Notes: generated from the sequence alone by a model not told the origin. A stretch of DNA of 64,000 bases from Eutreptiella sp. 'Long Island Sound 2002' (GCA_964036045.1 OZ038378.1:199640001-199704000), one strand, 5' to 3'. Positions 8,711 to 45,869 are shown, counted from the stretch's first letter. Made by a program: numbers and translations.

Positions 8711-9168
8711 AATCCACACTTTATTGCGTGGCCCCTCAAGTTGGGGTTAGGGACTCACAATCCACGCTTTGTTGCGTGGCCCCTCGAGTTGGGGTTAGGG
8801 ACTCACAATCCACGCTTTGTTGCGTGGCCCCTCGAGTTGGGGTTACGGACTCACAATCCACGCTTTGTTGCGTGGCCCCTCGAGTTGGGGTTAGGGACTC
8901 ACAATCCACGCTTTGTTGCGTGGCCCCTCGAGTTGGGGTTAGGGACTCACAATCCACGCTTTGTTGTGTGGCCCCTCAAGTTGGGGTTACGGACTCACAA
9001 TCCACGCTTTGTTGCGTGGCCCCTCGAGTTGGGGTTAGGGGCTCACAATCCACGCTTTGTTGTGTGGCCCCTCAAGTTGGGGTTACGGACTCACAATCCA
9101 CACTTTGTTGCGTGGCCCCTCGAGTTGGGGTTAGGGGCTCACAATCCACGCTTTGTTGCGTGGCCCCC
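8711..9168 (+). repeat. 48-bp minisatellite, ~9.5 copies
   Basis: Unit AATCCACGCTTTGTTGCGTGGCCCCTCGAGTTGGGGTTAGGGACTCAC; contains a CCACGC/GCGTGG hairpin and, in most units, TTAGGG. Confidence 0.95.
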
Positions 9169-9376: not shown

Positions 9377-10619
9377 GTACAATACAAATGACAGTTGGAG
9401 TTGCTGAATTCACAGATATTGCTTTATTATGCGAAGTGCTTTGTAGGGAAGGTGTGTAGTGCAATGTGGTCTACTTGGGGGGCTTCTCCATGAGAGGGTA
9501 AATTTGGGGCTGAAGTCGGGATAGTTAATAGAAAAGTAGCCGCAGTCGCAGCGGCCGAAAAGGCCCGTGATATCGCGGAACTCCCACAGGGGTTATTCGT
9601 ACTTGCTTCGCATGATGTGGTACATCCTCCTCAGCTGGTGCAATGTGCTCACTTGCCTTGGCAACACACCAGGGCAATCCTAGCCCCTTTATGAATGGGG
9701 TAGTCTCAGGTTTAACTCAGCATCCAACCACTCCTCCGTAGCAAGTGGCTGCAACTCAGGTTGGAGGTGGGCAAGGGCTGCCATGATGGCTATTGCCCAT
9801 GCTCCCCCGCACTAGCGGAGGCCCACAGAAGCGGCTTTTTGTTCACTGTTCACACGGATCATCATGCCGAGTAGGGGTGTGGCACCCGTAGGGGCAGCCC
9901 GAGGGAAATACTCCACCGCCACCTTCGGGTATTGCAGCCAGTCTTTGTGCTGCCCCCCCCTTTCAGTGCACCTCGAAGAAAGCCTTGCTAGTAGGGCCCT
10001 TGGTAATGGGTAGAACCTTCCCACAAGGGCACTGCCACTTCTTAGCGGCTATGTTCCGTTCCCGCCACCCAGCATCAGCATAGTAGGAGACACGGGGGGG
10101 GGGGGGGGTAGCCATAGGGGTTGTGGAGAATGCAAAACTCATAGTGAGGTGACTTGAAAACTGACAAACACAGAGAATTAGGAAATTGTTTCATGGTGCC
10201 CAAAACACCAACAAGCAAGTTGTGTCAAGCACATATGACCCGACCAAACAGACCATCCACACCAAACCACCAACACCCGGAGCTACTTGGGGGTGGGTTG
10301 TTGGTAACCCATTGCGTAACGATGACCCCCATGCCCAACCCCCCATGCCCAACCCTAATAGAGGTAGGACAACTGGGCCACCCGCAGTGGGGCTAGGTGC
10401 AAGCAAACAGTCCACACACCTTTTCAACTTTTTCAACCAAGACTCTTGTCTTTTTTGGACCACAACACTTGCCCCCCCCCCCCCCCCCCCCGCCTACCAG
10501 GTGAAATTTTGCTTGTTGCGGGAGAATTTTTCGCAACCCCCCCCCCCCCCCGGTGGGACCTTAGACAACCACCTACACCTCTTGTGAGGTGCACCCGGCC
10601 GCTACCTAGGGGGAGGGTG

Positions 10620-10950
10620 GGGGGGGGGGGGATGACACCTGATTGTGTTGTTGTCTGCACCTGGCGTTGCATCTTGGCCTCTCGCCACTTCCCCACTTCC
10701 CACCGCCCTTCCCTTGAACCCTTTCCCTCCCGAGGTAGCAGTGCCTGTCGACCTCTCACCACCTTGTGTCCTCCCTCGACCTACCTAGTCTATCCTGACC
10801 TCCCTATGTACCCTTCCTTGCCCTTGGCAGATTGTACCAATGAAGCCCTTGTACTTTCCTTGTTTCAATGCTCTGTGTCGGGTTCACACAAAGAGGGCAA
10901 CTACCCTTGCCATAGGCTAGGTGCGTCCCGGTGGACACCCCATACAGGCA
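10620..10950 (-). repeat. Diverged short copy of the retroelement 3'-terminal repeat
   Basis: Colinear similarity to 11450-11830 and 51597-51850 (GATGACACCTG...TGTCTGCA, CTCTCACCACC, TTGTACCAATGAAGCCC, TGTTTCA). Confidence 0.7.
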
Positions 10951-11445
10951 GTGGGGGATCCCATGCAACATTGGTCTTTGAAATACATTGACCTAGACAA
11001 TCATGCTCTTCTGAATGGTACTTTTGAAAATCACCGGAACCAGTTGTCCCGTGTACCCCACCCCCCTTGTCCTAATAGGGGTAGGGTTCTAGTTCAAGGG
11101 AGGGGGGGGGGGGGGGCAGGTGGCAGAAGCAGAGTGTTGCCGTGTTTGGACAAGCCCATGTTGCCGCACGGCAAGTACCACAGAACACATATTGCAGCCA
11201 ACGCTACCCCTGTACAACTACAAAAAGGTGTCCGACAGGCCACCATACACCCTAGAACACATGAGCACACGGAATTACAGTTACACCCACGCTGCGCACC
11301 CATATTGACCCTTCCTGCATGCTGCACAAAGCTACCAACCACATTTTCTATTGGATTGGAGCCTCAAAATCGATGTTTCCAAAAAAATGCGAAAACACGG
11401 GGTCACTGTGTTTGGAAAAGCCCATGTTAGGACAGGGGGGGGGGG

Positions 11446-14400
11446 TTTTGGCATGACGCCATGGTGTGATGATCTCGTCTGCAGCTGGCGGCGCCTACTG
11501 GCCGATCGCCATTTGCTGCCCTTCCCTTGGACCCTTTCCCTCCATAGGCGGTGGTGCCCATCAGCTTCTCACCACCCTTTGACCTTCCTCTTCCTCCTTG
11601 CCCTAACCTTCCCTCTCCCCTCCCCTTTCCCTTCCCTTGGCCTTTCCCTCTGTAGGCCACGGTGCCCATCGGCCTCACCACACTCCTTCCCTTCCCTTTC
11701 CCTTGGTCGGTTGTGCCAACGGAGCCCCCGGACTTGCCCTGTTTCACTTCTCTGCGTCGAGTCCACGCAGAGGAAGGCAAATGCCTTCGCCGTTGGCCAG
11801 GTGCGTCCAAGCGGCCATCCCAAGCCGGCGGTGAGGTACCTCTCCCCAACGGCGGCTGGTGGGCCCTGGGATGGCCACTTGCAGGGTCGTTTCCCCGACG
11901 GGGGCACATAACAACCTTTCTCCTCCAAGTTCCCGCGCTCAGTCCATCCTTTGGCGAGCGCAACACAAACCCCCTACCCTCTCCTTCATGCCTTTGCTGC
12001 GCGGACGGGGGTTGTGGGGGATGCGTGGGTGCACGGGGGAGTAGGATGTAGCGGGTGACGTGGGGTGGGCCTCTTACCGTCGCTGGCCGCCCACTTCGTT
12101 GCGCGACTCCCCGGACCACCTCAACATAGGAGCGAGTTGTTGTTGGGTTGACGGTGGTGTCCCGTGTTGGATGGAGGTGCGTAGGGCCCCTTGCTGGCCC
12201 CCTTCTCCCGGCTTGGTCCGGGCGCTTGACGACGTGGTGCGTCCCTTTTCTGGTTGAGTTGCTACGCGAGGGAAGGAGTCTCTCCCCTGCTCGCTTCTCA
12301 GTGCCAGCACGCTGGGACTTACTGCCGTGGTCACTCCCTTGAGAGCGCGGCCCCCGGTGGGCTTGCGTTGCCACATCGGGCATCTCGCTGAGGCCCCATT
12401 GGACCCCCCGAGAAGAACTCGGTGCACGTGTAGACTTCATTGTTTTGTTTTGGTCGGTGTTGGTCACCACCCTGGCTAAAAAAGTGCGGGGGTTGCCTTC
12501 CCCCTGCCTGTTGTTTGGCCTTGCCCCCTACTCCGCCGGCGAGAAAGCTCGCTGCGCGTTGTGGTAGCCGGGGCGCATCCAATGGAGACTGCGGCGCCGT
12601 CTCCATTGGGCATGGGTCCAGAGGCCCGTCCACGGCCGTACCTCAGACCACATCGTTGTGCCTTGTTGCTGTATCACTGGGGGCCGCGGCTCCCCAGTGT
12701 GAGTCTCGGTGGCTGGAGGATCTTCTCCTCCCCAGCAGAGCCATGTTGATGGTGTGAGACTCTCCTTTCCATCAGGCTTTTTGCTTTCATTGTTCTTCCT
12801 TCTCCTCCCGGCGCCGGGTTGCCCGTCCCTTGGGTTCCTGGGTCGCTTGGCGCCCGGTCTCAGTCCCTCTTGCTTCAAGGCCTAGGCCATGCCATGGTGC
12901 GTTCCGGGTCGCGCCTTTGTGCTCGGCACTGCGCTGAACAAGTTGCACCCCGTCACCTTGACGCCGTCGGAACTGTGCGACCGTGCGCTTCCACGCCCTC
13001 TTGTCACCCGCGGGTGGGGCTTGTCCGCTTCTCACTTCGGTTCCATCTTCTACTCCTTGTACAGCCGGATGCCTACTTGCTCGGCAATCACGTTTGCCCT
13101 GTGCAAGTTTTGCATCAACCTGGTTGTGTCCTCCACTGTGAAGTTGATGCCCTCCCCGATGATGAACACCTCCGGCTCCCAACGTCTCACCTCCGGCACC
13201 CATACCGTTGAGGCTAGCACTCGCACTTTGTACACCTGGTCTGGTGCCAATAAGTACATGTTGCTTCCTGCCTCGGGGTAGTCGGAGAACCACCCTCTCC
13301 TCCTTTTCTCCGCGAGGATCCGGTCCGCTTGGATGGCGCGGACGTGGTGCGTGTGCCACCGGAACTTCTCATGGAACAAGAGGCGGCGGGTCCGTTGCGT
13401 TCCCGACCCCGGTGGCGGTGCGCCCTTGGGTGTACCCTCACCGTGGCTAGCCCCCATTCCACTCGCATGTTCGGAACGACCGGGCCTTTTGCTTCCCCAC
13501 AAGAAAGACCAAAAACCCTCTCCATCGCCCTCCGTTTCTGGGTTTTTGGCACTTGGTGGCGCTTCCTCCGGGGCTGTTTGCCCCGCCGAACTTGAGCTGT
13601 TGCAGAAATTGGATCGAAAGTATGTGGGGTTGAACTGGTAGTTGGGTGGTTCCTCCGCCGGCCTTGGCGGTGTCACCCCGGGCGCACTTTTCCATCCCTC
13701 GTAGCCGGAGGTCAACCTTTTGAACAGGTGGGTGGCTTTGGCAATGTTGTTCATGTTCTTGTCCGGATGTAACCGCAACACCCACTTTTTGTATGCGGCC
13801 TTCACTTCATCCATGGTGGGTGCACTACCCACTCCAATCTGTTCAAGAAAGCTCCATCCTTCAAAACCCGGGGGCAGCACCTCAACGGGCTCAACTACCT
13901 CCGGGACCACCTTCTTCTTGTCCACTTTTACTCGGCGCATCCCTCCCACTAACAACACTTGCACTTTGTCCTTGTAGATCTCCTCCAACACCCCCTTGTG
14001 GCCCTCCAACTCCGGTTGTCTCATCCCTACTAGCCTCACCCCATTCCATAGTTCAAATGTTTCTTCCTGCCCTCCCATCTCTCCTTCTTCACTCCTTTCC
14101 TCCTTTCTTCCGTGCGGTTCATTGTCTCCCGCCACCCCGCGTCCTTTTGTTTCTTCCCCGTGCTGTTGTTGTTGGGCAGCTTTTGAGTCCTCGGCGCCTC
14201 CCATGTGCTCCACCTCTTGCACCCTGACCCTATCCAATGACACCAAAACCCTTCTGCCACAGTCCATTCGGAGTCTTACTTTTCCTTGTTCCTCGATGAT
14301 GCTTTCAACCTCACCTGTCTTCCCCTCCAGTTCCATCTTTTTCTTCATGCCTGTTAGTGCTACTCTTCCCCCGAGAACAATGCGATGGCCATCCACTCCA

Positions 14401-17400
14401 ACCACTTCCGGTCTCTCGGAGTCACTTTGCTGTGGTTCGGCCCGTGCTTGTGGCTTGGGGGGTTGTTCCTCCAGCGCCACCCCTGCCTTCCTCGCTTTGC
14501 TGCGTTGTTCTCTCCTCCTCTGCTTGTGCCTCTCTCTTTCCTCCCGCAACCATTTGGCTGGCCTTGCCTTTCTGCACCTACACTGGAACACCCTGTTGCT
14601 GCGGAACACCTTCTTCGCCTGGGAGACAGTGACCCCAGCACACTTCAAGTGCATCCAGTGCCCCTGGCTGCACCTCACTGCTCCCTCCTTGGCCCTCAAC
14701 GGTCTGCAGCATAGCCCACATGCGTGCTTGGGACCACGCTTTTGCGTCCAAGCTTCGGGTCCAACCGTGCTCGCTGTCCCGTTGCTGCTCGTGCTGCTAT
14801 CACTCTCCTCATTGTTGTCGGGCTTGGTGTTCTCCTTTTCCTTAGGTGTGCTTCCTGCTCCCAACCATTTGGTCCACCACCTGTTGTTTCCCATGTCCAT
14901 ACAACCACCATCCTCGGCCTCCACGAGGACCACCGGCACTTCCTCCTGCTCCCTCCAAACCGGGTGAGGGTCATCATCATCCCAAACTCCAGCAAGATGT
15001 TCGTGATACCGGTGATCCACTCCCGGTTTCTTTCGGCGGATTGCGGCACATCTGTTTGCCACCTCCATGCCCAAGACGGACATTGTGTAGGCCTTTAGAC
15101 CCCCCTTCAGTGGGGCACACGCCACTTCATCCGCTGGAGAGGTCCAACTTTGCACCACTCCAACTGCTGGGCCTCCTTCCGGTATAATTGACCATAGCGT
15201 TTGGCCAATTGTGTTGAGGGTGCACACGTCCAAGGCTGATAGCACCGGCACATGTCCTGGATGCGTGTGTATCCAACCAACCAATTTTCCTCCCAAGGAT
15301 GCGCCCCAACTGACCGCCTCTGTGAGCGCCTCATCTCCCACTGCACAGTGGTGGCTTGTTTGTACGTCGTGTCTTGGTATGTGTAGACCCCCTACTTTGA
15401 CCCCATTTTCGGTCCTTGTCCCCCACAACAATCCCATGGTCTCTTTCCCTTGGCTTGCCGCTTCCCGGACTGCTTGGTTCCATGTCTCCAATATGTCCTT
15501 GGGGAGCTCCACTTGCCATTCACCCTTTCTTGGTTGTGGCTTTGTTCGTCTTGATTTCGCCTCCTCCGAGGTCACCTTCTCTTCTGTCGGCCCCCTCTCT
15601 TCGGCTTCCTTCAACCCGTGGTTTCCCACTCCTGTTGGGTGTTGTACCTTGCTGCGGTCCTTGTTCTTTGTCGCTTTTGGACGTGGTTGTTCGTCCAACA
15701 CCCCCTTCTCCACCCCATCCACTGCCACTTCTCGAGATGGTTCTGGCTCTCCCTGGCCGGGGGCATTTCTTCTCTCCTCCTGCCTTGGTTGTTTCTTTGT
15801 CTCTTCTTCTTCCACCACGTCTAGCTCTGGGTTCTCCTGGCTTTGGCCTCCCGCTTCCTCTTTCCTCAGCCCTTGCAACCATCTCAAGATTGATATGTCA
15901 CTGTTGGTGTCACTATCTTCTCCATGTCCTCCGCTTTCTTCACCTTGCTGCTCATCCTCTTGCCGCTGTGGTGGATATTGTTCCTTGTGGCTTTGGATTT
16001 CGCTCTTCTCCTTTTGCTTGTGGTCTTCTTCCTTCTCCTCCTTCTCCCCCACCTCTAGCCCCACTTGTGGTGATGGACGAGGCCCTCCATGGTCTTCGGT
16101 GTGGCTCTTCCTCTGTTGCCTTTGTTGCTCCACGGTCGCCTCATCGTCCACCACCTCCGGCCGCAAGTCCTTGTGTCCCTCCATTTGCCCTCCTTCGCCC
16201 CTTATCTTCAAGCCTTGCAGCCATGTCAAGATTGATACGTCACTGTCGGTGTCACCGTCTTCCACTTCTTTTGTTCCTTTGTCGTCTTGGCTCTCCCTCT
16301 CCTGCCGCTTCGCTTGTTCTTCCTTTTGTTGTCTCTCAACATCATTTGTCAGGCTTTTGTTGGTGCTTGCAGCCTCCGTGGTCTCGGCGCACCCAACTTT
16401 GCGGTTGTCGCTTTGCGTTGGCGCCACCAACGGTGGTTCCCTCAAGTCCACAACCACCACCGTCTCCCGCCACACACCACAGTTCTTCATCTCCTCTTCC
16501 TCTCCGACGATCTCAGTTGTTCTCACCCCTTGTGGGTGCGGATTTTTGGCTTCCCTCCTTTGGGGTTCCAGCCCGCCTTCCGGCGGTGTCCACACTTTCG
16601 GTGGCGGTGGTACGTGCTCAAACGGGCAGCTCTTTCTCCGACACCTCCACCCGTACCAACATCTCTTCTTTCTCCTCTCTTCTTTTGAGATCTCCTTCCT
16701 TACCCACCGTTGCATCCGTCCAAACCACACGTGCATCTCCCCCATGGTGATGTCTTGTCCACCCCACCACACTCGCAAGAACTTGCCCCATTGTTTCTTT
16801 TGCTCGTGTGTCCCATAGCCTCGCTGTGTGGCCGTTTTGGTGATGGTTTGGATCGCCTCCTTGAATAATCGCAAAACTGAGCACAACCTCAATGCTCTGA
16901 TGTATTGCCCTGTCAATACTCCCAACCTTTGGGCGTCCAAGATCATGCTATCCCTCACTGGATATCGCCTTATTTTTATGGGATAGTCCTTCTCTCTCCA
17001 ATGCACTCCGGTTTCAAACTTGGTGCGCCCTTTCTCATCCTCTCTCCACCACAAGTCAGCCCCCAAGAAGACAAGGTGGCCTCCATCAGCGGCTCTTCGG
17101 ACCGTCCTTTTGAGTTTGTATGCTTCCTCCCCAGGGACGACGCCGGTCAAGGAAAACATGTCATCCACAAAGCGATAGTTGTGTTCCACTTGCTCCGGCC
17201 TCCTTCCTTCTTCTTCCGCGAACCTCTTCTCCGTCCCATAACACGCCAAGTTCGCCAAGAAGACGGCACATTTCAGTCCCATTCCGAAACCTTTCTTTTG
17301 CTTGTACACCACACCCCCTTGCTTGACATATCCGTTGTTTAGTACCCACTGCACCATCTCCTTCACTTCTCTCTTGCTCCAGCTGTCAGCTTGGGGTTCC

Positions 17401-18360
17401 TCCCCCTTTCGTCCAAGCCACCAACCGTCTTTTCCGACCCGTAGCTCTTCCTCCTCTTCCCCATCCTTGTCCTCCTTTGCAGTTTGTTATTCCCAGTCCC
17501 AAGCCTCCTCGATTGCCTCCAACACGTTTGTGGAGACGTAGTCTTGATCCATGCTTGGGTACATCGCCACGAAATCTCCCACTTCCGCCGAAGCTTTACA
17601 TTGCGCTATCAATTCCTCCTCAAATCGGACCGGCTGCGTGAACTCCTCCACACTATCTATCCACCACACCCTCTTCGGGTTCCCTTTCTTCCTCCATTCC
17701 ACATCCTTGCGTTTCAAGCTTCTGCATACTTGCGTTAATGCTTGCACCAAGACCTCTCCGACTCCTGCTATGCTTGCTTCCGGCTTGTCTTTCTCTTCTT
17801 CGGTTTGTTTCCTTGCTCCACTAATCCATCGTATGTTTTCTTTCTGGGCCTTCCATATTCCATATATGTACGGCAACCTTCTGTTGACTGCGAGGAGCCT
17901 CTCCGCGTGGTAGTCTTCGTGGCGTTGTAGGATGGCCTCCTCACTTTCCGGCGCGACCTCAAACCCATCACTTTGGAGGTATATGTCCCTCCGGTGCTTG
18001 TATAGTCGCTTACATCCGCCAACCCAGTTGTGCGGACCCCTATCCTCCTTCAAGAATGCAAAATCTTTCTTCATGTCCTTCACTTTTTGCATCCCTTCCG
18101 TCCCTTGTGGCAACGTGTGAACCTCCTTGTCCACTTGCCACATCACTTTTTTCTTGATCAAGTCTTTCCACCCTTCGTAGTCCTCTCTTTGCCCTGCTCC
18201 ACTTCGTACTTTGCACTCGATGTACTCCGTTAACCCCTCTTCCAAGTTGTGGAGCACCTTCCATTCTGGCTCTTGCTGCTTGAATTTGTATCCTTTTTTG
18301 TCCACGTCTTCCATTATTGGACTATTGAAGCCCGCCATCTCTGTCACGACTGTCATGACA
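11446..18360 (-). mobile_element. Penelope-like retroelement (Naiad/Chlamys-type RT), apparently 5'-truncated, in intron 6 of the selenoprotein gene
   Basis: RT motifs KGYKFK, DFAFLKEDRGPHNWVGGCKRLY, LPYIYGIWK, GDFVAMYPSM, YKQKKGFGMG, YRFVDD and GVLTGQYIRA; bounded by G11 (11435-11445) and G15 (18361-18375). Confidence 0.85.
13050..18356 (-). pseudogene. PLE polyprotein: RT + CCCH + JAMM/MPN + PHD + 2x KOW/SH3-like + DnaJ + unknown domain; one in-frame TAA at 17487-17489
   Basis: ORFs 17487-18443 and 13050-17366 are in the same frame and separated only by a TAA plus 40 open codons; domain motifs read directly from the translation. Confidence 0.85.
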
Positions 18361-19574
18361 GGGGGGGGGGGGGGGAGCAAGTCCTCTCTAATACTAGGCA
18401 GATGGCCACCAGGACTAGCAGACGAATGGTGAACCCTTTCCAATAATCCAATGAGCGGGATAAGGTGGCACTCCTCTTTCCATGGGTTTGCACATAAACC
18501 ACGTCACGTTACCTTCTCGACCGCAAAAGCTGTGGTCGGAAGAACAATAATATGCGGTCAACTTGTGGAGAAAAGGCCGGGCTTGCGCTGACACGCTCAG
18601 GGGAGGGGAGGGGTAAAGAGCCCCAGATACAATATGAGCCCTCCCAAGGCCCCACCACACGATTGTGGAATGATGATGGTGACTGTTCAGCTCGCAGCCC
18701 CTCAGATGACCGGTTGAGACCACCGGCTGTGATTGCCATCCCATGCTGTCATCCATCCCCAGATGTCTACCCGACACATCAGATGAGCTCCCACCCCAGC
18801 CAATGACAACCACTACCATTCTACCCCACGTGGCCCACATTTCATGATCTTTTTTTCAAAAGCATCCATACTTTCCGATACCTTTCCGTTTTTCACAGAT
18901 ATGCCACAGATGGTGTTGCATTCTTTGACACAACAGCTTTGTTTTTCTGGAAGCAGGAGCCTACACACTCACCCAAATAGGGGATGCAGAAACCCATGGG
19001 CCCCACATCGCTGCCACTCCCTGAATAACCTCACGCACAACATTTTGATTCCCACGGGCATGAGGATGCCAAAGATGCAGAGGATGCACGTGCACCATTT
19101 GCACTGTGTCAAGGAGAAGGATGCTGAGGGTATTGTAAGACATGGCACAACAGACCAGCTGGGCATCGAGGCATAGGCAGGACGGCCCTGAAGGATTAAT
19201 ACAAGTTGATTTCTGCCCTGCCCAACAAATGCACAAACCCAAAAAACAAGAGGCACTACACACGGCAAATTTTCAAATCATCCAGTGATACATCCATTTT
19301 GTCACCAGCAACGACAAGACATATGAACCTCCGACCGCAGTAGGCAGTTTATGGACCAAAAATTGGCCATTAGCCACCGGCAGGTTGTGGTCAACCACCG
19401 GCGGGCAGTGATTCACCGCTGGCCCAGAGCGCGGTCATGAAGGGGCGGTCCTTCGTGGAAAAAAAAAACCTAATTTGTTTCTAAAAGGACCACCCTCGGG
19501 GCATAGGGTCAGAATGAAACGCGTGAATCCTGGGTTGCCCCGGCCTGCCCTGCACCTTGCCGACTCAGGCACAC

Positions 19575-25315: not shown

Positions 25316-25919
25316 GATATGATTTGCACGTCTGAGGGTAAAGACCACAACACAGCAACATGCAAAGATGGTAAATAAATTGCTTTGCTTCATTGCAAAT
25401 GTGCAGACACAACCACCCTGCTGCCTCATGACTTATTGTATTGTCATGGTTTTTCATGATCCTGTACATACTACCCCCCCCTCGAGGTTTTGGGCTCTTG
25501 ATGAATGCCAAGCCCCTTTCCCCCGCCTTTGTCCTCCCCTCCCTCACCAGGGAAGAGGGTCCACGCCAAGTGACGCCCCCAGCCCGCCCTCCAGGGAGCC
25601 GCACTACCACTGTACACGCACATTGTGTGGCACAGAAATTGCAGCAGAAAACGAAATAACAAAGCACAAGAAACATTGGTGTGCAGAGATTATCAAGGTG
25701 AAAACACAATGACAGGTGAAAGCTGGTGTGCCAACCATAAGAAAGGCATGCGTGCGTTCAATGAGCTGCCAACGTCATGAAACTTACTCCTTGAGCGGCT
25801 CGAGATAAAATTCTATTGCCTATCGGCAAGGCGCCTCCAAGAGGGAGGGAGTGCAGTCAGTCAATCACCCACCCCCGTCCAAACACCCAAATAGGGGGAA
25901 AAAACCAAAGAAAGAGGGT

Positions 25920-26510
25920 CTAAAGCATGCTTTACGTGGGATATTTGATCATTGTGAATGGTCAGCATATCAAAAAAATCGGTTTTGAAAAATTTCCAAT
26001 TTTGAGCTGAAGAGGGTGGTAAATTGGTCATGCAGTTTGTGCGCACATCAGGTGTCACTGAACCACATACAAACAGCAATGTTGGGGCTTTTGGGGGATG
26101 TGTGTCTGTCACGGGGGGTGTCTCCCAAGGGATTGGTACACAACCCCTGCTTATGCAGTTTTTCGCCCTGAGCAGCTCAAAAATCTGAACCCTGAAAATC
26201 TGAAAAGTTTCTGAAACCTGTTTTTTTAAATCATGACCACTCACAATGAGCATGCAAGCTATGTAAAGCATGCTTTGGGCAGTATTGATGTGTTTTTTTA
26301 CCCTATTTGGGTATTGGGTGGGGGGGGGGGGTTCCCAAGGGATTGGTACACCACCTGCTCATGCAACTTTTTGGCATGGGGGCAGCTCAAAAATCGAAGT
26401 TTCCGAAACTAGTTTTTTTGATATCATGACCACTTACAATGACCATCCACGTTATGTAAAGCATGTTTCAGGCAGTACTTATGTGTGTTTTACCCTATTT
26501 GGATGTGCAT
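25920..26510 (+). repeat. ~190-bp unit repeat family (TTTTTCACCCTATTTGGG...CCCAAGGGATTGGTACAC...GCTCAAAAATCGAAGTTTCCGAAAC)
   Basis: Occurs as short tandem runs here and at 35830-36270 and 46160-46460; partial copy at 28286-28380. Confidence 0.85.
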
Positions 26511-26771
26511 TGCTCAGGGTAGATTCCCTGTGAGGTGGACTTGCCAAAGGGAATTGAATTTTTCAAAACGTGACCTTCCCGAAACCCTTCTGTCACCCCT
26601 AGGATAGGGTTGGGTGATGATTTGGTGACAATATGGGTACTTGGGCACCCATGGGGACCCACGTGGTGGCCGCTGGGCCCATGTAGCCCCAGCCATGGGT
26701 CACACCCAATACCCATAAAAAAACATAAATGCTACCGAAAATAGCTTTACATCAAAAAAACAATGTTCGGA

Positions 26772-31528: not shown

Positions 31529-34500
31529 TTAGGCGTCCAGATTAATGGTCAGAATATGCAACAATTGGGTCTCCTTCAGTGCTGCAAGTGCTTGGGCCCC
31601 ACGATCTCCTCCTGAATTGTACTGAAGATCAAGGGTCAGAGTATGCAACAATAGGGTCTCCTTCAGTGCTGCAGGTGCTGGGGCCCCACTGGCTCCTCCT
31701 GAATTGTGCCGAAGATCAAGGGTCAGAGTATGCAGCAAGGGGGCCTCCTTCAGTGCTGCAAGTGCTTGGGTCCCACTGGCTCCACCTGAATTGTACTGAA
31801 GATCAAGGGTCAGAGTATGCAACAAGGTCGTTAGCAGGTCACAAAGCGCTCCACACATGCACGTCCTGGTGTGCATATGCAGCAATGTTTGGCAGTTCCA
31901 TGTCGTTGGCCAAAGCCACACGCAAGTGCTATGCTGCAACCGGATACAAGCCATTGATATGCTACATGCTTCGTCCTGTGATTTCCTTCTGGGGGCTGGA
32001 CCGTGTTTTGTCTACCGCAATGCGATAGAGTATGCAACAAGGGGGCCTCCTTCAGTGCTGCAAGTGCTTGGGCCCCACTAGCTCCTACTGAATTGTACCG
32101 AAGATTGAGGGTCAGAGTATGCAACAACGGGGGCCTCCTTCAGTGCTGCAAGTGCTTGGGCCCCACTAGCTCCTGCTGAATTGTACCGAAGATTCAGGGT
32201 CAGAGTATGCAACAAGGGGGCCTCCTTCAGCGCTGCAAGTGCTTGGGCCCCACTGTCTCCTACTGGATTGACCGAAAGATCAAGGGACAAGGTCTGCGAG
32301 CGATGGGGCCTCCTTCAGCGTTGCAAGTGCTTGGGCCCCACTGTCTCCCACTAAATTGTACTGAAGATCAAGGGTCAGAGCATGCAACAAGGGGGTCTCC
32401 TCCAGTGCTGCAAGTGCTTGGGCCCCACTGTCTCCTACTGAATTGTGCCGAAGATTCAGGGTCAGAGTATGCAACAAGGGGGCCTCCTTCAGTGCTGCAA
32501 GTGCTTGGGCCCCACTGTCTCCTATTGAATTGGCCCCAAGATTCAGGGTCAGAGTGTGCAACAAGGGGGCCTCCTTCAGTTCTGCAAGTGCTTGGGCCCC
32601 ACTGTCTCCTACTGAATTGTCCAAAAGAGTAAGGGTCAGAGTATGCAACAAGGGGGCCTCCTTCAGTGCTGCAAGTGCTTGGGCCCCACTGTCTCCTATT
32701 GAATTGACCGAAACATCAAGGGACAAGGTATGCAGCGATGGGGCCTCCTTCAGTTCTGCAAGTGCTTGGGCCCCACTGTCTCCTACTGAATTGTCCAAAA
32801 GAGTAAGGGTCAGAGTATGCAACAACGGGGGCCTCCTTCAGTGCTGCAAGTGCTTGGGCCCCACTGTCTCCTACTGAACTGTCCGAAAGATTCAGGGTCA
32901 GAGTATGCAACAAGGGGGCCTCCTTCAGTGCTGCAAGTGCTTGGGCCCCACTGTCTCCTACTGAACTGTCCGAAAGATTCAGGGTCAGAGTATGCAACAA
33001 GGGGGCCTCCTTCAGTTCTGCAAGTGCTTGGGCCCCACTGTCTCCTACTGAATTGTGCCGAAGATTCAGGGTCAGAGTATGCAACAAGGGGGCCTCCTTC
33101 AGCGCTGCAAGTGCTTGTGCCCCACTGGCTCCTACTGAATTGTGCCGAAGATCAAGGGTCAGAGTATGCAGCAAGGGGGCCTCCTTCAGCGTTGCAAGTG
33201 CTTGGGCCCCACTGTCTCCCACTAAATTGTACTGAAGATCAAGGGCCAGAGTATGCAACAAAGGGGGCCTCCTTCAGTGCTGCAAGTGCTTGGGCCCCAC
33301 TGTCTCCTACTGAATTGTGCCGAAGAGTAAGGGTCAGAGTATGCAACAAGGGGGCCTCCTTCAGTGCTGCAAGTGCTTGGGCCCCACTGTCTCCTATTGA
33401 ATTGGCCCCAAGATTCAGGGTCAGAGTATGCAACAAGGGGGCCTCCTTCAGTGCTGCAAGTGCTTGGGCCCCACTGTCTCCTACTGAATTGTCCAAAAGA
33501 GTAAGGGTCAGAGTGTGCAACAAGGGGGCCTCCTTCAGTGCTGCAAGTGCTTGGGCCCCACTGTCTCCTATTGAATTGGCCGAAACATCAAGGGTCAAGG
33601 TATGCAGCGATGGGGCCTCCTTCAGTTCTGCAAGTGCTTGGGCCCCACTGTCTCCTACTGAATTGGCCGAAACATCAAGGGTCAGAGTATGCAACAAGGG
33701 GGCCTCCTTCAGTGCTGCAAGTGCTTGGGCCCCACTGTCTCCTACTGAACTGTCCGAAAGATTCATGGTCAGAGTATGCAACAAGGGGGTCTCCTTCAGC
33801 GCTGCAAGTGCTTGTGCCCCACTGGCTCCTACTGAATTGTGCCCAAGATCAAGGGTCAGAGTATGCAGCGATGGGGCCTCCTTCAGCGCTGCAAGTGCTT
33901 GTGCCCCACTGTCGCCTACTGAATAGGAGAAAAGATTCAGGGTCAGAGTATGCAACAACGGGGTCTCCTTCAGCGCTGCAAGTGCTTGTGCCCCACTGGC
34001 TCCTACTGAATTGACCGAAACATCAAGGGTCAGGGCATGCAGCAAGGGGGCCTCCTTCAGTGCTGCAAGTGCTTGGGCCCCACTGTCTCCTACTGAAATG
34101 CCCGAAAGATTCAGGGTCAGAGTATGCAACAAGGGGGCCTTCTTCAGTGCTGCAAGTGCCTGGGCCCCACTAGCTCCTACTGAATTGGCCGAAAGATTCA
34201 GGGTCAGGGTATGCAGAAAGGGGGCCTCCTTCAGTTCTGCAAGTGCTTGGGCCCCACTAGCTCCTACTGAAGTGTCCCAAAGATCAAGGGTCAGAGTATG
34301 CAACAAGGGGGCCTCCTTCAGTGTTGCAAGTGCTTGGGCCCCACTGTCTCCTACTGAATTGGCCCCAAGATTCAGGGTCAGAGTATGCAACAACGGGGCC
34401 TCCTTCAGTGTTGCAAGTGCTTGGGCCCCACTGTCTCCTACTGAATTGGCCGAAACATCAAGGGTCAGAGTATGCAACAAGGGGGCCTCCTTCAGTGCTG

Positions 34501-35707
34501 CAAGTGCTTGGGCCCCACTGTCTCCTACTGAACTGTCCGAAAGATTCATGGTCAGAGTATGCAACAAGGGGGTCTCCTTCAGCGCTGCAAGTGCTTGTGC
34601 CCCACTGGCTCCTACTGAATTGTGCCCAAGATCAAGGGTCAGAGTATGCAGCGATGGGGCCTCCTTCAGCGCTGCAAGTGCTTGTGCCCCACTGTCTCCT
34701 ACTGAATAGGAGAAAAGATTCAGGGTCAGAGTATGCAACAACGGGGTCTCCTTCAGCGCTGCAAGTGCTTGTGCCCCACTGGCTCCTACTGAATTGACCG
34801 AAACATCAAGGGTCAGGGCATGCAGCAAGGGGGCCTCCTTCAGTGCTGCAAGTGCTTGGGCCCCACTGTCTCCTACTGAAGTGCCCGAAAGATTCAGGGT
34901 CAGAGTATGCAACAAGGGGGCCTTCTTCAGTGCTGCAAGTGCCTGGGCCCCACTAGCTCCTACTGAATTGGCCGAAAGATTCAGGGTCAGGGTATGCAGA
35001 AAGGGGGCTTCCTTCAGTTCTGCAAGTGCTTGGGCCCCACTAGCTCCTACTGAAGTGTCCCAAAGATCAAGGGTCAGAGTATGCAACAAGGGGGCCTCCT
35101 TCAGTGTTGCAAGTGCTTGGGCCCCACTGTCTCCTACTGAATTGGCCCCAAGATTCAGGGTCAGAGTATGCAACAAGCGGGCCTCCTTCAGTGTTGCAAG
35201 TGCTTGGGCCCCACTAGCTCCTACTGAATTGGCCGAAACATCAAGGGTCAGAGTGTGCAACAAGGGGGCCTCCTTCAGTGCTGCAAGTGCTTGGGCCCCA
35301 CTAGCTCCTACTAAATTGTCCGAAAGATTCAGGGTCAGAGTATGCAACAAGGGGGCCTCCTTCAGTGCTGCAAGTGCTTGTGCCCCACTGTCTCCTACTG
35401 AATCTACTGTTGTTGTTCTATTGTCCGAAAGATCAAGGGCCAGGGTATGCAGCAAGGGGGCCTCCTTCAGTGCTGCAAGTGCTTGGGCCCTACTCTCTCC
35501 GACAGAGGGCACTAGAAAATGTAGTGCTCGTACATTCCCTATCAGTTCTTCCATACACGCCACAATCTGCTCTGCCCCACAATGGATGGCCACATAACGA
35601 TGGCTCCCAAGTACTTTCCTCAGTCTCTTGCACACTTGACTCAGTGACTCTGACTGCAGAAACTCTGCAATGGCATCCCATACTTCCTCAGGCAATGGAG
35701 GTATCAT
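31529..35707 (-). CDS. F-box + leucine-rich-repeat (RNI-like, 29-aa units) protein; 5' 822 codons open, 3' part frameshifted
   Basis: N-terminal LPEEVWDAIAEFL...LSQVCKRLR (F-box-like); ~43 units of LHTLTLxLxxNSVGxSGAQALAxLKEAPL; +1 insertions near 33259, 32826, 32298 and 32128; terminal stop at 31529. Confidence 0.85.
31828..32026. mobile_element. 199-bp insertion in an LRR unit with a 16-bp target-site duplication
   Basis: AGAGTATGCAACAAGG at 31812-31827 and 32027-32042 flanks non-LRR sequence. Confidence 0.8.
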
Positions 35708-39856: not shown

Positions 39857-40141
39857 TCAATTGATGGCAAATGCCGTCACGGCCGCCTGATTTGCAAAGC
39901 CGTCCTTGGGTTCATCATAGCCTGCGTACTGATACAGCACTGGCCCCTGCGTCGTGCCGGCCAGCAGCAAATTGTTGGAGCCTGCAGCAAAGTCCATGTG
40001 TGTTACGGAGGCTCCCTCGAAGGGGAGCTGCAAGCGACGGGAACTGCCACTCTCTGTGTCGCACACCACCAGCCGGTCATGCTCAGCACAGGCTACAAAA
40101 GAGGTTCTCTCCACCACGTCATCTATCAATATGCGGTTATC
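39857..40141 (-). CDS. RFWD3: RFWD3-like E3 ligase, exon 5 (WD40 end)
   Basis: CAG|GAT; DNRILIDDVVERTSFVACAEHDRLVVCD...VTHMDFAAGSNNLLLAGT...AIN*. Confidence 0.75.
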   Translation of the reverse strand, partial: DNRILIDDVVERTSFVACAEHDRLVVCDTESGSSRRLQLPFEGASVTHMDFAAGSNNLLLAGTTQGPVLYQYAGYDEPKDGFANQAAVTAFAIN

Positions 40142-40214
40142 CTGAGGCATCAAGAGGTAGTGCAGTAAGGGAGAGGGCATGGAGTGTGGTGTAACATGGG
40201 AGGGGGGGAGGGGC

Positions 40215-40426
40215 AGGGGTGCATTAGAAGGGAAGGGGCCCCAGAGGCGGCCCCAGAGGCGGTTAGGCAGGCAGTTGGGGGGGGTTGCCGAAGCGGTTGG
40301 GGGCGGTTATTGTCGGTTACAAACACCATTGAAGCCGGCATTTGCCGTCATGGGGACAGTGGCTGGGCATAGGCCGGGCTCCCTCGAGGGGGAGGGGGGT
40401 ACCTCCCCCCCTTCCAATGCATCCCT
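40215..40426 (+). mobile_element. MITE-like element with imperfect ~18-bp TIRs
   Basis: AGGGGTGCATTAGAAGGG ... CCCTTCCAATGCATCCCT. Confidence 0.75.
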
Positions 40427-40483
40427 GGGGAGGGGGGCAGCAAGGGAGGGGGAGGGGGGATGGAAGGATGGGGTTGGGCCGGG

Positions 40484-40935: not shown

Positions 40936-41059
40936 AACGGAAGGCAGCAACCAGAAGCCCACAACGAACCAGGGGTGCGGGGGATACCTGCCCATGCTGC
41001 GTGCTGAATGCGCACGCCACCGTGGGGCACGGTAGAGCACTGCTGCCCCCCACAGTGAC

Positions 41060-41521: not shown

Positions 41522-42842
41522 CTGGAAATGAAGGAGCTATCCCCAGAAATGGCCGTCCAATCCCCGCCCCCTCCCACCAACAGCAAAGCCGATATACACA
41601 ACTCGGCACAAACAAAAGTAGGCTGCGCACTTGGCGCAGAGCAATGTGAACAGGGAAGGGCGATGGACCGGACGGTGTGGACGAAGCATCCTTGAGCAGA
41701 CTTACGCTGTTGAACAGAGCGGTGCACCAGGGGCTGACTGGAAGTGATTTGCCTGGGAGGCGGGCAGGGCTTCTTTTGAGCAGGGGGGGGGAGGGGGGGA
41801 GGGGGTTTTGGACCCAAAACTTGGTGTACCAAAAATGGCCTGACCAGATTTTCCCTCTTGTAAATTTCGGTTTTTCCCACGATGGTCACTTTGGTCTGGG
41901 GAGGGGGGGAGGGGGTTTTGGGGGAGGGGTCCCCCCCCCCCTTGGTTTTTAATTATTCTAAAGAAGCCCTGGAGGCGGGGGGTTGGGTGGTTTGGGAGGG
42001 ACAGGGGCGACTTGCTTGAGCAGGGGGGGGGGTCCCCCCCTGTCGGAATGAAAATGAAAGCAAGTCCCTGGGGGAGGGGGGGGGCTCTTGTGTGTAGAAG
42101 ACTGGCAGAAGCATGTAGCATGTTGAGCAGGATGCAGCTCAAAGGGGAGTGTGCCACGGCGGGGAAACTGCGGGATTGCCCCGCTGCACAGGCGACGGGC
42201 TGACGGCCGCTGCGGGCGCGCTCCGTCTGGGGGGCGGGCATGCGGATGGAGGGACCTGCACGGCTACAACACCGGGCCCACGGCCCCTGCGTGCGGACGT
42301 TGTGCCGCGCCTCCGCCTCCGCGAGTCCACGCTGGTGCCCAGCCGTGTACCCCCCCCCTCGGGGCCCATCCTTCAGCCCGACACCCCCCCCCCCAAGAGC
42401 CTGGCAGCGGTGCAGGACGGCACGGATATGGAATGCGCCTTCGACGGGCAGATGCATTGCCCCGGTTTCCCACACAAACACGCAGCAGCCGTTTGAAGGA
42501 TCCTCCAAACGTTCGGGGGGGGCGGGGGCATGGCGATCAGGGAGGGGCAAATCCAATTGCAAAAATTTCGAAAAAAAAATGCGAAAATTTGCGAAAAATG
42601 CGCGAAAATTTCGAAAAATTGCGGTGCCGCAACCAAACCTCCCAAATCTCAAGGAGCAACACTTCTGCACAAGGATCAGAATGCTTCTGTGTCTCTTCAA
42701 ACAAACAATTACCAAAAAATTGCCAAGAATTGCGAAATTGCAAAAATTGCGAAATTGCGGGAAATGGCGAACCGTTGTCAGTGCACCACTTTTCCAAGCA
42801 TCCCCCCATTTTCACAGATGGGACGCAATGGTACTGACACAC

Positions 42843-43561
42843 CTCAACCAAGTCGTCGTCGTCCTCCTCGTCAACATCAACAACAATGACATCGCCGGAG
42901 TCATTGGCGGGGGCCGGCTCGTGAGGGCTATCATTCCGGAGGTCGAAGCACACCTCCTCCGGCTTGGCCACAGGGATGTGTTCGTCCTTGGGCTCCACGT
43001 GCATGGAAACTGCTGAAAAGCTGTTGCAGGGCACGGGAGAGCATGAGGAGGAGGAGCTGGGGAAGAACGCAGAAGAGTGCGCAGAGGAGGTGGAAGAGGC
43101 CGCAGAGGAAAAGTAAGAAGGGCAGAACGCAGATGGAAAGGGCGCGGAGGATGAGGAAGAAGATGATGTAGATGTAGATGAGGATGAGGAGGAGGAGGAG
43201 GAGGAGGAGGAGGAGGAGGATGGAAAGGTTGAAGAAGAAAAGGCCGATGAAGATGTAGAAAGCCACCCTGAAGATGGCACAGCGCAGGAGGACAGAGCTG
43301 AGGATGATGATGACGATGAGGATGATGATGACGATGAGGTGGCAAAGGGCGCGGGTGACGAGGAGGAATTGCAGTCAGTGTCCACAGGAGAAGCACTGCG
43401 CCACATGCTGTCGCCCCAGGCAGAGGAGGCTTTTGAGGTGGTGGTGTTGTCCGTGGTGGGGGTGCTCAGTCCGTTCTGGAGTTTATGGTCCCCCGTGCGG
43501 ACGGGCAGGTCACAGTAGTCCAGGGAGATGATGGGAGCAGGCCTGGAACAGTCTTGAATTC
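42843..43561 (-). CDS. RFWD3: RFWD3-like exon 3 (Ser-rich/acidic low-complexity insert)
   Basis: AG/GT-bounded, 719 nt, phase 1/0; (G)IQDCSRPAPIISLDYCDLP...poly-Ser...DVDEEDDDDLVE. Confidence 0.75.
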
Positions 43562-44084
43562 CTGAAGAGCATGGCAGAGATCCAGGCAAATGCACTGGAA
43601 GAGGTGGTGAGTGGGGGTTGGGGGGGGTGGCAGATAGATTGGGTGGACCTTCTGCCGCAAGAAGGCATTCCCAGACCACAAGCAGACAAGCAACCGGCCC
43701 GAGACAATACACCTGAGACAATGCATCTGACCATTGAAGTGGAGTGGAGGTCTGGAAAGGCAATGAAGCCGGGCGGGTGGAAAATTGCCCCACGGTTCTG
43801 TCAGGCCATTACAGGGGCAGACGGTCTGCATGGGACCGACATGGGGACCAAAAACCAAGGAAAAAAATGAAAATGGCATTTTTGGAATCAGCGTGTCGAG
43901 GGGGGTCAGAAACGTGGTCATTTGCCCCCTTTTCATGAAAAAAAATCTCGAAATATTCGAAGAAAAAAAACGGCCAAAATCAAGGCCCCTGAAAGAAAAG
44001 CCCCCTTTCTCACCCCCCCCCCCTTCCCTTGAGGTCGTGCGGGATCGTACGTGGGGGTTTATCATGCAGCAGTTGCCAGTCGGC

Positions 44085-44400
44085 TGGATGGACGGGGCTG
44101 GATTTGTTGGCATTCACTCTGGGTTGCAAAGGAATAGGATGCGATCAGAGTGGACTGGATTGGGTGCTTTAACAGGATGGGGCAAGGCTGCATCGGGTCT
44201 GTATTGGAGTGGAGTGCACTGAATTGCACTGGATTGGATTGCATTGGACTCGACCAGATTTGATGAGACTGCACCACGCTACACCTTGTGTCAAACGGGA
44301 TGGATCGCCCGGAACACATGGATTGGAATGCACCAGATTGCCGCTGGAATTGGACTGGTCTGCGATTGGGCTGGATTGGGCTGAACAGGACGGGGCTGGA
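44085..44400. repeat. Degenerate pentamer satellite (GGACT/GGATT)n
   Basis: e.g. GCACTGGATTGGATTGCATTGGACTCGACC. Confidence 0.8.
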
Positions 44401-44527
44401 CAGGCCGGCGGCAGGGGCCATGTTCCGCAGGAGCCAAGGCCCCCAGCGCAAACCGCCCTCCGGCTGCCCCTCAGCAGCAACAGCGGTGCCGCACCAGAGC
44501 CGCCCTCCGCTGCGCACGCGCGCACAC

Positions 44528-45086
44528 CTGTCGGCCGCCACTGCACCGCCTGCCGCGTGTGGCGCAGGTCGTAGAGGCACACGCAGCCGCCCCGGGTCCC
44601 GAGGTACACCGAGCTCAGCCCACCGGGCCCCACGGCGCAGCACGTGCCCATGTGCTCCCCCAAGTGCGCCACCGCCCCCTCCGACCGCGTGCGCAGGTCC
44701 AGCGTGCGCACTGTCGAGTCCGCCAGCACCGCCACGACGGCCCCCATCCCCGCGTCCTGGAACTGCATCACCGCCGCTGAGCCCGGGCCACGGGCGAAGC
44801 CGTGCCGCTCACAGCGCTCCACCCGCGCCGCAGGGCCGTGGGCGGCCGCCCCGTAGTGCACGTCCACGACGGCGAAGCCGCAGGCGTCGGCGCCGGCGCC
44901 GGCGTTGCTGACCAGCAGTTTCCGGCCGTTGGTGTGGCGGAGGAAGCGCGCGCAGGAGACGCGCCCTGCGACCGGTAGCGGGTACGCGAGGGCGACAGGG
45001 AAGAGGTGCTTGCGGGCCACGGCGGAGTTCCATTCGGTGATGTGGGGCAGGAGGGCGAAGAGGGACTGGAACTGCTGGTGTTGTGC
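44528..45086 (-). CDS. RFWD3: RFWD3-like exon 2 (coiled-coil end + WD40)
   Basis: AG/GT-bounded, 559 nt; ...STVRTLDLRT...GTCCAVGPGGLSSVYLGTRGGCVCLYDLRH. Confidence 0.85.
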
Positions 45087-45869
45087 CTGGGGAATGGCGG
45101 GGCGGGGCCGGGGTGCCAAAACAAGGGGGACAGGGTGTTTGGGCAGGGGTACGCCAGGGCACTGCACAACCCAAGCGGCATCACTGATGGACACCCACCG
45201 GCAGTCACGCATAGCCCAGGCTGATCCTTCTGGGGTCCAACGCAGGCCTTTGCTTAGTAATACTGGAGAGCAGAGAGAGCTATGGTCAGTTCTCATTGAC
45301 TGAATGCCCCCGCCATAGGCACTTTCAGGTGGAGAATGTAAGTCGTGCACAAAAAAATCGCCATATTGTGTAATGTTATTTTTTTGCTGTCAGCGTGTGT
45401 ATTTTTTTTTTAATTGTTCTATTTTGAAGTGTCGGTTTGGACTGCCTCTGTGGGATTCATTGTGCACATCCCAAAAATATTTTCAACTCGTCTTGCAGCT
45501 GTGTGCAGAAAGCTTGGTCAAAAAAAGTACATGATGTGGCGATTTTTGTTGTACACATGCCGACAGCACAAAAAGAAATACATGACTCACAACATACACC
45601 ATTATCAGCCTCTAGTCCAACGACGTGTGTCCTTCACAGTAAAACTGCAATCCACTGTGTGCACTGGGCTGTGCCCTTCTTCGAAGGGGTCAGGGAGCTT
45701 GGTCAACCGTCAACGTTGCCCCCAATTCCAAATAACTTGTTCATTGCAGCGTTCTCCTTGCCCTTGTTCCTCTTGGCTTGCAACAGAGTGTGATGCTGCT
45801 GGTGCCACCTGTGCTCTTGAATTCTATTGCCTTCGGCAAGGCACCTCGAAGAGGGGAGAGGGATGATCA

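Follow-up and report, generated by a model that had tools for sequence, protein, structure and literature searches.

The window analysed here, a stretch of 64,000 nucleotides of DNA from Eutreptiella sp. 'Long Island Sound 2002' (OZ038378.1:199640001-199704000), contains on its minus strand a retroelement in which a reverse transcriptase (RT) is followed, in one reading frame, by a predicted deubiquitinase of the JAMM class and a J-domain. We consider it very likely that we are dealing with a dead copy of a Penelope-like element (PLE) of the Chlamys type, which exists in multiple copies, was active recently and has a conserved accessory half. Taken alone, the window copy is an ordinary dead insertion. 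PHD fingers and a Josephin-like extension are already published for PLEs, and the interest lies in the family-wide pattern of isopeptidases.

Two open reading frames (ORFs) of the minus strand, 17487..18443 and 13050..17366, share one frame, whose only stops lie at 18506, 17489 and 13052. From 18356 on, this frame comprises approximately 1768 codons; it is interrupted by a single TAA (17487-17489) and closed by a TAG (13050-13052). This is in agreement with an original prediction, made from the window's sequence, of a frame of about 1770 codons with a single TAA, and the domain coordinates given there match the recomputed positions within a few bases. The limits it had set for the element, 11446 and 18360, adjoin homopolymers (G11 at 11435-11445 and G15 at 18361-18375 on the plus strand), and homology with other copies covers 11441 (or 11437) to 18350. 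The window copy is dead, being truncated at its 5' end and carrying one nonsense codon; DNA comparison with the full unit of a second copy, L003 (~10472-19181), indicates that the first ~1.74 kb are missing. The copy and its borders are composed as follows:

11441..18350, minus strand: element copy, 5'-truncated and non-functional, of a PLE of ~8.7 kb that is very probably of the Chlamys type
18351..18375, minus strand: 5' junction, on the element strand (C)15 TGTC followed by six additional bases (ATGACA) and the truncated element
17487..17489, minus strand: TAA in frame, located between RT motifs A and B and peculiar to the window copy (a sense codon in L003 and L004)
11441..13049, minus strand: 3' untranslated region or tail, 1.6 kb, with the end ...GCCAAAACCCCC; upstream partial copies of it form the pseudo-long terminal repeats (pseudo-LTRs) of full-length copies
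11431..11445, minus strand: 3' junction, on the element strand a C-run lengthened to (C)11, then TGTC

A word-based protein search with the RT part of the window retrieved a protein of 99% identity and nine relatives at 43-48% identity. The former leads a cluster of 169 members, each of which comes from a large contig of a single ENA assembly. The cluster member P0024 has 2504 aa in an ORF without interruption, and the two pieces of the window correspond to its residues 739-1025 and 1027-2504 at 99% identity, without gaps and with a shared C-terminus. At the DNA level window positions 18350-11437 are 98.1% identical to L003 12215-19183, and the identity to L001 5221-12074 is 98.6%, the matches with L001 and L003 covering 6.86-6.97 kb. 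Four copies were compared (window, L001, L003 and L004). Two of them, L003 and L004, are intact, and the other two are broken at different sites, L001 by a TGA at residue 980 together with a 2-bp deletion. The intact copies possess a 2504-aa ORF with an additional N-terminal GIY-YIG endonuclease and a CxC motif; the GIY-YIG domain is missing from the window copy because of the 5' truncation. The full-length element thus has ~8.7 kb and one ORF of roughly 2100-2500 aa, encoding in this order GIY-YIG, CxC, a TERT-like RT, a CCCH knuckle, an acidic linker, an AMSH-like JAMM domain, a Cys/His finger, KOW/SH3-like modules, a J-domain and a C-terminal region. The ORF from RT to DnaJ described in the original prediction therefore stands, and its picture of the element needs completion at the N-terminus. 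The family is multi-copy and, judged from these copies, looks recently active.

Since the other copies carry the same domain string, the string in the window is one conserved ORF and not a chimera. The original prediction had itself raised the doubt of a one-off chimera or misassembly. Such a string could arise by a chance fusion of a PLE fragment, an insertion into a host deubiquitinase or chaperone gene, or an assembly error. Nothing beyond the unusual domain string speaks for such an origin. At least three further contigs contain this continuous ORF at 98-99% identity, a cluster of 169 proteins exists, and the ends of the element are well defined and accompanied by a target duplication, so that we regard this alternative as refuted and hardly conceivable any more.

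The ends of the copies give a further hint towards the class of the element. In L003 a 696-bp copy of its own 3' tail is found upstream (9776-10471 compared to 18486-19181, 99.86% identical), in L001 the upstream tail copy measures 2060 bp, and many solo tails of 200-700 bp possess one common 3' end. The upstream repeats are partial tandems, i.e. pseudo-LTRs, and occur along with heavy 5' truncation. True LTRs were considered and rejected, as the length of the upstream repeat varies among copies (696 vs 2060 bp). The (C)11 TGTC at the 3' end and the (C)n TGTC at the 5' end of the window copy probably represent a target-site duplication, and two copies in L004 have lengthened C-runs directly 3' of the element end. 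The presence of (C)n TGTC on both flanks is compatible with an insertion into (C)n by target priming, in the course of which (C)n TGTC was duplicated. Chlamys elements are expected to insert at (C)n or (CA)n, and (C)15 TGTC and (C)11 TGTC flank the window copy.

Two observations on the tail are reported in addition. An open frame of 366 codons in the 3' tail was rejected as coding, with pN/pS of 0.6-1.1 and stops in a diverged copy. Where copies lie in tandem, the open frame in the upstream tail continues into the ORF of the next copy (L003 9776-10471, from 10001 onward; window 11430-12527, minus strand), and automatic gene calls therefore begin in the pseudo-LTR, which adds a Gly/Lys-rich N-terminus. 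Elsewhere in the window 290 bp (51689-51976), adjoined by a GGTTGGC-like microsatellite (51288-51517), are 77-78% identical to the part 11689-11976 of the tail and probably stem from an older or related PLE subfamily.

The RT itself comprises the following parts in the window:

16695..18350, minus strand: RT from the DKG-like motif to the thumb, equivalent to P0024 residues 739-1290
18018-18053, minus strand: DKG-like motif, which reads EDRGPHN (K replaced by R)
17811-17876, minus strand: LPYIYG..RWISG motif
17547-17582, minus strand: motif A
17247-17300, minus strand: motif B
17154-17177, minus strand: motif C (FVDD)

An AF2 model of the RT, computed from a 98-sequence alignment, reached a pLDDT of 91.8 and a pTM of 0.88. 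If this model is compared to the PDB by Foldseek, the sixteen best matches are without exception TERT structures (E 3.7e-9 to 1.2e-5), and a group II intron RT comes next; the TERT match covers 570-760 aligned columns at a sequence identity of 9-14%. This is in line with the sister relationship of PLE and TERT RTs (PMC8557442). With an RT profile, 3876 relatives were obtained among 1.84 billion representatives, and 291 of the relatives had E values up to 1e-30. Several relatives show weak RVT_1 matches, and Pfam GIY-YIG was found in 21 out of 37 relatives with at least 150 aa preceding the RT. P0024 residues 425-549 align with the Pfam-positive GIY-YIG domains, with Y, Y, R, E and N kept. P0024 has no Cys between residues ~420 and 600, nor do the relatives where they align to it, hence neither a CCHH nor a CX2-5CxxC finger is present. 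The consensus of the 98-sequence alignment contains CxC (P0024 residues 718-722, conserved among relatives), P.DKA.HN..CK..Y, LPYLY..HK..R.IAG and the RT motifs A-E. Motifs A and B are ~90 residues apart, and the insert between them (IFD) forms an extra helix and a hairpin in the model.

The clade of Naiad and Chlamys elements is characterized by an N-terminal GIY-YIG endonuclease, CxC, an insert between motifs A and B and a modified DKG, further by rare hammerheads, pseudo-LTRs and 5' truncation (PMC8557442). The equivalent of DKG is DKA in Naiads and DK plus a variable residue in Chlamys, and Chlamys elements are told apart from Naiads by the missing CCHH of their endonuclease, by their greater length, by a preference for (C)n/(CA)n targets and by the accessory domains (PMC8557442). 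Our element shares with the Chlamys group the N-terminal GIY-YIG without CCHH, CxC, the modified DKG, the long A-B insert, the lack of a canonical hammerhead, pseudo-LTRs, frequent 5' truncation, (C)n insertion and the tendency toward accessory domains such as PHD and SAP (PMC8557442). With ~8.7 kb it lies slightly above the 3.3-8.2 kb or more reported for Chlamys, and the string of CCCH, JAMM, zinc finger, KOW-like modules, DnaJ and an unassigned domain does not appear in that paper (PMC8557442). By these features the element is very likely a Chlamys-type PLE.

The Penelope-like identity assigned in the original prediction is borne out by the TERT fold matches, the N-terminal GIY-YIG of the relatives, the pseudo-LTRs and the 5' truncation. 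A grouping of the RT with those of LINE or LTR elements, which had been named there as the contrary outcome, was not observed; by Foldseek and by the GIY-YIG domains of its relatives the RT goes with TERT and PLEs. Another class of retroelement (LINE, LTR, DIRS) or a domesticated TERT-like host gene might still be suspected from the LTR-like direct repeats of 696 bp with 99.86% identity that flank one copy, and from the missing hammerhead ribozyme, to which Rfam gave no match, be it at the gathering threshold or with E values up to 10. (Rfam found no RNA family of any kind in window or element, and the window contains no tRNAs.) The lack of a hammerhead argues against the canonical PLE clades with C-terminal endonuclease only, because Naiad and Chlamys elements are mostly without canonical hammerheads. 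The upstream repeat has 2060 bp in another copy and is the element's own 3' tail, the endonuclease is of the GIY-YIG type, domain scans of element and relatives found no integrase, APE or REL endonuclease, and the top fold match is TERT. A single host gene is excluded by the multi-copy status, the truncated copies and the target-site duplication. We therefore judge a different class or a domesticated gene to be very improbable.

The accessory half of the Chlamys-type element follows the RT. Its features in the window are:

16614..16661, minus strand: CCCH zinc knuckle (C-x5-C-x4-C-x3-H), directly after the RT thumb
15525..16577, minus strand: acidic low-complexity linker, seen in the translation and as an internal DNA repeat
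16206-16247 and 15864-15905, minus strand: two copies of the linker motif D-S/T-D-V/I-S-I-L-x-W-L-Q-G-L
14985..15515, minus strand: JAMM/MPN+ metalloprotease, AMSH-like, predicted deubiquitinase (Pfam and PDB matches)
15420-15446, minus strand: JAMM E motif
15228-15275, minus strand: JAMM HxHx7SxxD motif
14574..14720, minus strand: Cys/His zinc finger, PHD-like by pattern (W-x-H-x-x-C), in common with the OTU-carrying relatives P0005 and P0026
14220..14372, minus strand: first beta module, weakly similar to the second (E 0.02-0.1)
13905..14045, minus strand: second beta module with a KOW/SH3-like fold (AF2 pLDDT 85-92)
13689..13856, minus strand: J-domain, HPD intact at 13761-13769
13053..13679, minus strand: C-terminal region of ~200 aa, with homologues within the element family only, before the stop TAG at 13050-13052

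Pfam matches were judged against the cut-off of each family, and a sub-threshold search was carried out to E 10. The protease is recognised by Pfam JAB (E 1.1e-5, 25.7 bits compared to a cut-off of 22.5) and Prok-JAB (E 3.3e-6, 27.4 bits compared to 25). Its best sequence relatives in the PDB are sst2, AMSH-LP and STAMBP (E 8.8e-6), and E, HxH, S and D of the intact catalytic motif all align to Sst2 and AMSH-LP. The CCCH knuckle has Cys/His columns conserved to at least 90% across the family and weak Pfam matches below cut-off, namely zf-CCCH_tandem in the window (E 0.024) and zf-CCCH_2 in the relative P0005 (E 1.1e-3). Both domains were found where the original prediction had placed them, the JAMM domain by Pfam and motifs, the knuckle by its pattern and a weak match to a hidden Markov model. 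We further note that the linker repeat in front of JAMM, acidic and Ser residues followed by V/I-S-I-L-x-W-L-Q-G-L, resembles a SUMO-interacting motif.

The J-domain, likewise predicted, is matched by Pfam DnaJ above its cut-off (E 3.6e-7, 30.6 bits compared to 27.8) and by DNAJB8 in the PDB (E 1.6e-5). HPD is kept in all relatives with a J-domain, P and D being nearly invariant. The region in between was only partly confirmed. The zinc finger has the predicted Cys/His pattern at the predicted site, a local AF2 pLDDT of 83-89 and phmmer matches to P0005, P0026 and P0027 (E ~1e-3), but no Pfam PHD match at E up to 10, and a PHD seed built from relatives did not retrieve it. Of the two predicted KOW modules the second is supported by its fold, with SPT5 KOW5 as the top Foldseek match (rmsd 1.6 A over 52 columns, TM 0.79, E 2e-3) and NusG KOW, L24/L26 and NdhS as other top matches; the first lacks fold support (AF2 pLDDT <50), and Pfam KOW did not match the window translation. 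The AF2 prediction of the C-terminal 580 aa was based on a shallow alignment and had a mean pLDDT of 53.5. The scan of the translation proposed in the original prediction therefore recovers DnaJ, JAB, Prok-JAB, the RT fold and the second KOW-like fold, but not the Pfam families for RT, PHD and KOW. Searches for a host protein that donated the module of zinc finger, KOW, DnaJ and C-terminal region, or for other long JAMM fusions, gave only fragments of the same family.

To obtain an estimate of selection the four copies were compared. The pN/pS ratio is 0.43 for the whole ORF and 0.14 for JAMM, which is in line with the dN/dS below 1 that the original prediction had proposed to check on genomic copies. 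Between the two intact copies, L003 and L004, it is 0.19; comparisons with the broken L001 range from 0.39 to 0.77 and include the two highest pairwise values. The fusion from RT to DnaJ is thus conserved and appears to be under purifying selection. One may argue that the accessory half is a functionless passenger, a host fragment captured in a young family and dispensable for transposition. Neither JAMM nor the C-terminal domain turned up outside this element family and assembly, and the pN/pS values of the linker, the Zn-KOW-J and the C-terminal segments are 0.55-0.60 with the linker at the upper end (0.60), both of which would be compatible with a passenger. The low ratio of JAMM and its intact catalytic motifs are at odds with it, as is the occurrence of an isopeptidase and DnaJ in the same slot of relatives at 43-48% RT identity and of other clades. 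Filling of the same slot across relatives and clades indicates long retention and repeated acquisition, and we regard the passenger as quite improbable.

The relatives provide the broader context for the conserved accessory half. The closest ones by RT (43-48% identity) carry CCCH, OTU, DnaJ and/or PHD in the same order. In P0005 and P0026 isopeptidase, Cys/His finger, beta module and J-domain are arranged as in our element, and finger and J-domain are detectably homologous. We counted the Pfam domains in the C-terminal extensions of 48 relatives with at least 150 aa following the RT:

OTU: 12 of 48 extensions
DnaJ: 9 of 48
UCH/USP: 6-7 of 48
PHD: 6 of 48
Josephin: 2 of 48
Ulp1: 1 of 48
JAB: 1 of 48 (the element in the window)

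In the RT tree, whose rows are unnamed database proteins without curated reference PLEs, the element falls into a clade of 13 rows with an SH-aLRT of 100. OTU is present in 7 of the 12 other rows; the remaining five have no isopeptidase in their own sequence, and for P0008 and P0038 OTU is found in cluster mates. The earliest branch of this clade, P0010, has OTU and DnaJ. By parsimony, JAMM would have replaced an ancestral OTU in the lineage of the window's element. The relatives with OTU and DnaJ, partly also PHD (P0002-P0010, P0026, P0041 and others, from metagenome or ENA contigs), share this RT clade with SH-aLRT 100 and the order RT, CCCH, isopeptidase, zinc finger, beta module, J-domain. 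They differ in having OTU in the place of JAMM; several end in a canonical PHD finger, and no N-terminal endonuclease was seen in the called ORFs of these short contigs. The carriers of USP form a second RT clade and those of Josephin and Ulp1 a third, so that the Josephin carriers sit apart from our element. A large fourth clade has GIY-YIG and RT only. In P0064 (2811 aa, from a remote search) a kinesin motor domain is joined to GIY-YIG and RT of the same PLE clade, probably by insertion of a PLE in, or read-through from, a kinesin gene.

The strongest argument arising from this census is that non-homologous isopeptidases (OTU, USP, Josephin, Ulp1 and JAMM) occupy one slot, which gives reason to think that isopeptidase activity itself is selected. 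The protease could in principle act in cis, cutting the giant polyprotein into RT and accessory parts instead of acting on host ubiquitin conjugates. The very long ORF with a disordered acidic linker between RT and JAMM would suit this function, and viral proteases of the deubiquitinase type (OTU, papain-like) often perform both polyprotein processing and deubiquitination. Isopeptidases of these classes, however, require a ubiquitin-like fold whose terminal Gly-Gly precedes the scissile bond, and Pfam detected no ubiquitin-like domain in the ORF or among the most frequent families of the 48 extensions. Furthermore we know of no JAMM enzyme acting as a polyprotein protease, and cis-processing seems improbable to us.

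As a tentative explanation we propose that PLEs with N-terminal endonuclease may have been in a long conflict with ubiquitin/SUMO control by their hosts. In its course at least five non-homologous classes of isopeptidase would have been captured by separate lineages in one C-terminal slot, in many cases along with a J-domain, and OTU would have been swapped for JAMM in one lineage. We hold this possible but less likely than not. The element itself would move by target-primed reverse transcription, for which its C-rich 3' end would anneal to a (C)n target that has been nicked. JAMM would remove ubiquitin, probably of the K63 type given its kinship to AMSH, from the element's own protein or ribonucleoprotein (RNP) or from chromatin and repair factors at the integration site. 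Such deubiquitination could shield the element against restriction or damage signalling that depends on ubiquitin. The J-domain may recruit host Hsp70 to fold or remodel the very large protein or the RNP, and the zinc finger and the KOW-like modules might provide the means for tethering the element to chromatin or nucleic acid.

While we favor a recently active Chlamys-type PLE with a conserved accessory half, one must keep in mind several points which weigh against it. Single-sequence Pfam and PDB searches did not recognise the RT of the window, an 11-sequence RT profile gave no match in the PDB, and the deeper 98-sequence profile reaches RTs at just E 0.014-0.7. The R..H motif of the endonuclease has Arg in place of His in P0024, and the placement among the Chlamys elements was made by diagnostic features and not by a tree with named PLE clades. 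In the accessory half the zinc finger is PHD-like by its Cys/His pattern only, a weak call; the KOW assignment of the first module is weak as well, and for the KOW-like modules "SH3-like beta module" is the safe description. The C-terminal region has no Pfam or PDB match and an AF2 pLDDT <50. The pN/pS values come from four copies in non-independent pairs, most of the relatives come from short metagenome or ENA contigs whose genes were called automatically, and the direction from OTU to JAMM depends on the root lying outside the clade of 13 rows. Finally, the proposed roles in deubiquitination, Hsp70 recruitment and chromatin contact, which the original prediction had suggested as well, are deduced from domain identity, catalytic motifs and conservation.

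The comparison to known systems shows which parts have a precedent. For Chlamys elements PHD insertions and a Josephin-like C-terminal extension were reported by Craig et al (2021, PMC8557442). The view that no PLE has this domain string, expressed in the original prediction, accordingly holds for JAMM, DnaJ and the KOW-like domain, which were not found in PLEs in the searchable literature, but not for PHD and a Josephin-like deubiquitinase (PMC8557442). More generally no report of JAMM, OTU, USP, Ulp1, DnaJ or KOW-like domains in PLEs was present in that literature, with most subscription journals and Repbase lying outside of it, and a search for Euglena with Penelope gave nothing relevant there. 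The closest published case is Chlamys-1_cBra from Chara braunii, which like our element has a long ORF (~1800 aa) and a C-terminal domain of the deubiquitinase type (PMC8557442). Its extension shows weak Josephin homology and a Cys/His motif; Josephin is a cysteine protease and no J-domain was reported, whereas our element carries a JAMM metalloprotease (PMC8557442).

Outside the PLEs, AMSH, AMSH-LP, Sst2 and STAMBP are the best sequence matches in the PDB and have the catalytic E, HxH, S and D in common with our element, but only the catalytic core up to the JAMM motif can be aligned, and the element is without an MIT domain. TERT is the closest solved fold; our element differs in being multi-copy and mobile and in possessing an endonuclease and accessory domains. 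Some Helitrons carry OTU and some Mutator-like elements Ulp1. These, like the Dualen non-LTR elements, are mobile elements with an accessory protease of the deubiquitinase or ULP type but belong to different element classes, and to our knowledge neither a JAMM metalloprotease nor a J-domain occurs in any of the three. In Dualen the protease is a Josephin-like cysteine protease (cited in PMC8557442).

The remainder of the window contains further repeats and ORFs. A tandem array at 32027-35403 (also 31539-31825) consists of ~39 copies of an 87-nt unit with 88% matches. The unit equals 29 codons, and long ORFs cross the array on both strands (e.g. 33239..35707, minus strand, 822 aa). The array represents either satellite DNA or the gene of a highly repetitive protein. 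A second array (8711-9167) has 9.5 copies of a 48-nt unit with 94% matches. A dispersed repeat of ~194 nt ending in a run of 12-14 G (26188-26527, 35826-36300 and 46282-46428) occurs in short tandems and in inverted copies near 25868-25994 and 28261-28326, and may be a short non-autonomous element likewise located at (C)n/(G)n runs. At 37614-37831 and 49524-49742, ~11.8 kb apart, there are inverted repeats, one of 142 nt with 86% complementarity and one of 59 nt with 92%; a DNA transposon with these ends, or else an inverted duplication, could account for them. Finally the block 40000-46000 has a higher G+C fraction (0.57-0.61) and overlapping long ORFs on the minus strand (41702..45350). Three scanned ORFs of this block gave no Pfam match. 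The same holds for ten long ORFs of the window outside the element, which thus yield no hint of the host. Spliced-leader patterns of dinoflagellates and Euglena did not match either, which is uninformative with regard to the host.

PLEs are the sister group of telomerase and their biology is poorly known, and accessory domains show what such an element needs, or what threatens it, in its host. Five unrelated ubiquitin/SUMO proteases in one slot, accompanied by J-domains and with one replacement, would be a convergent signal for a specific host pathway, and the pathway pointed to is ubiquitin-dependent restriction or damage signalling that limits retrotransposition. If the proposed conflict is real, this would be the first known case of a retrotransposon that employs a JAMM metalloprotease along with an Hsp70 co-chaperone of its own, and deubiquitination would be a general requirement for target-primed retrotransposition in these hosts. 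The family supplies natural intact copies for testing this. Chlamys elements were so far reported from the green lineage, Physarum and Ectocarpus (PMC8557442, PMC12477816), the latter being the first case in TSAR, reported in 2025 (PMC12477816). If the host is a euglenid, Chlamys-type PLEs would be extended to another eukaryotic supergroup.

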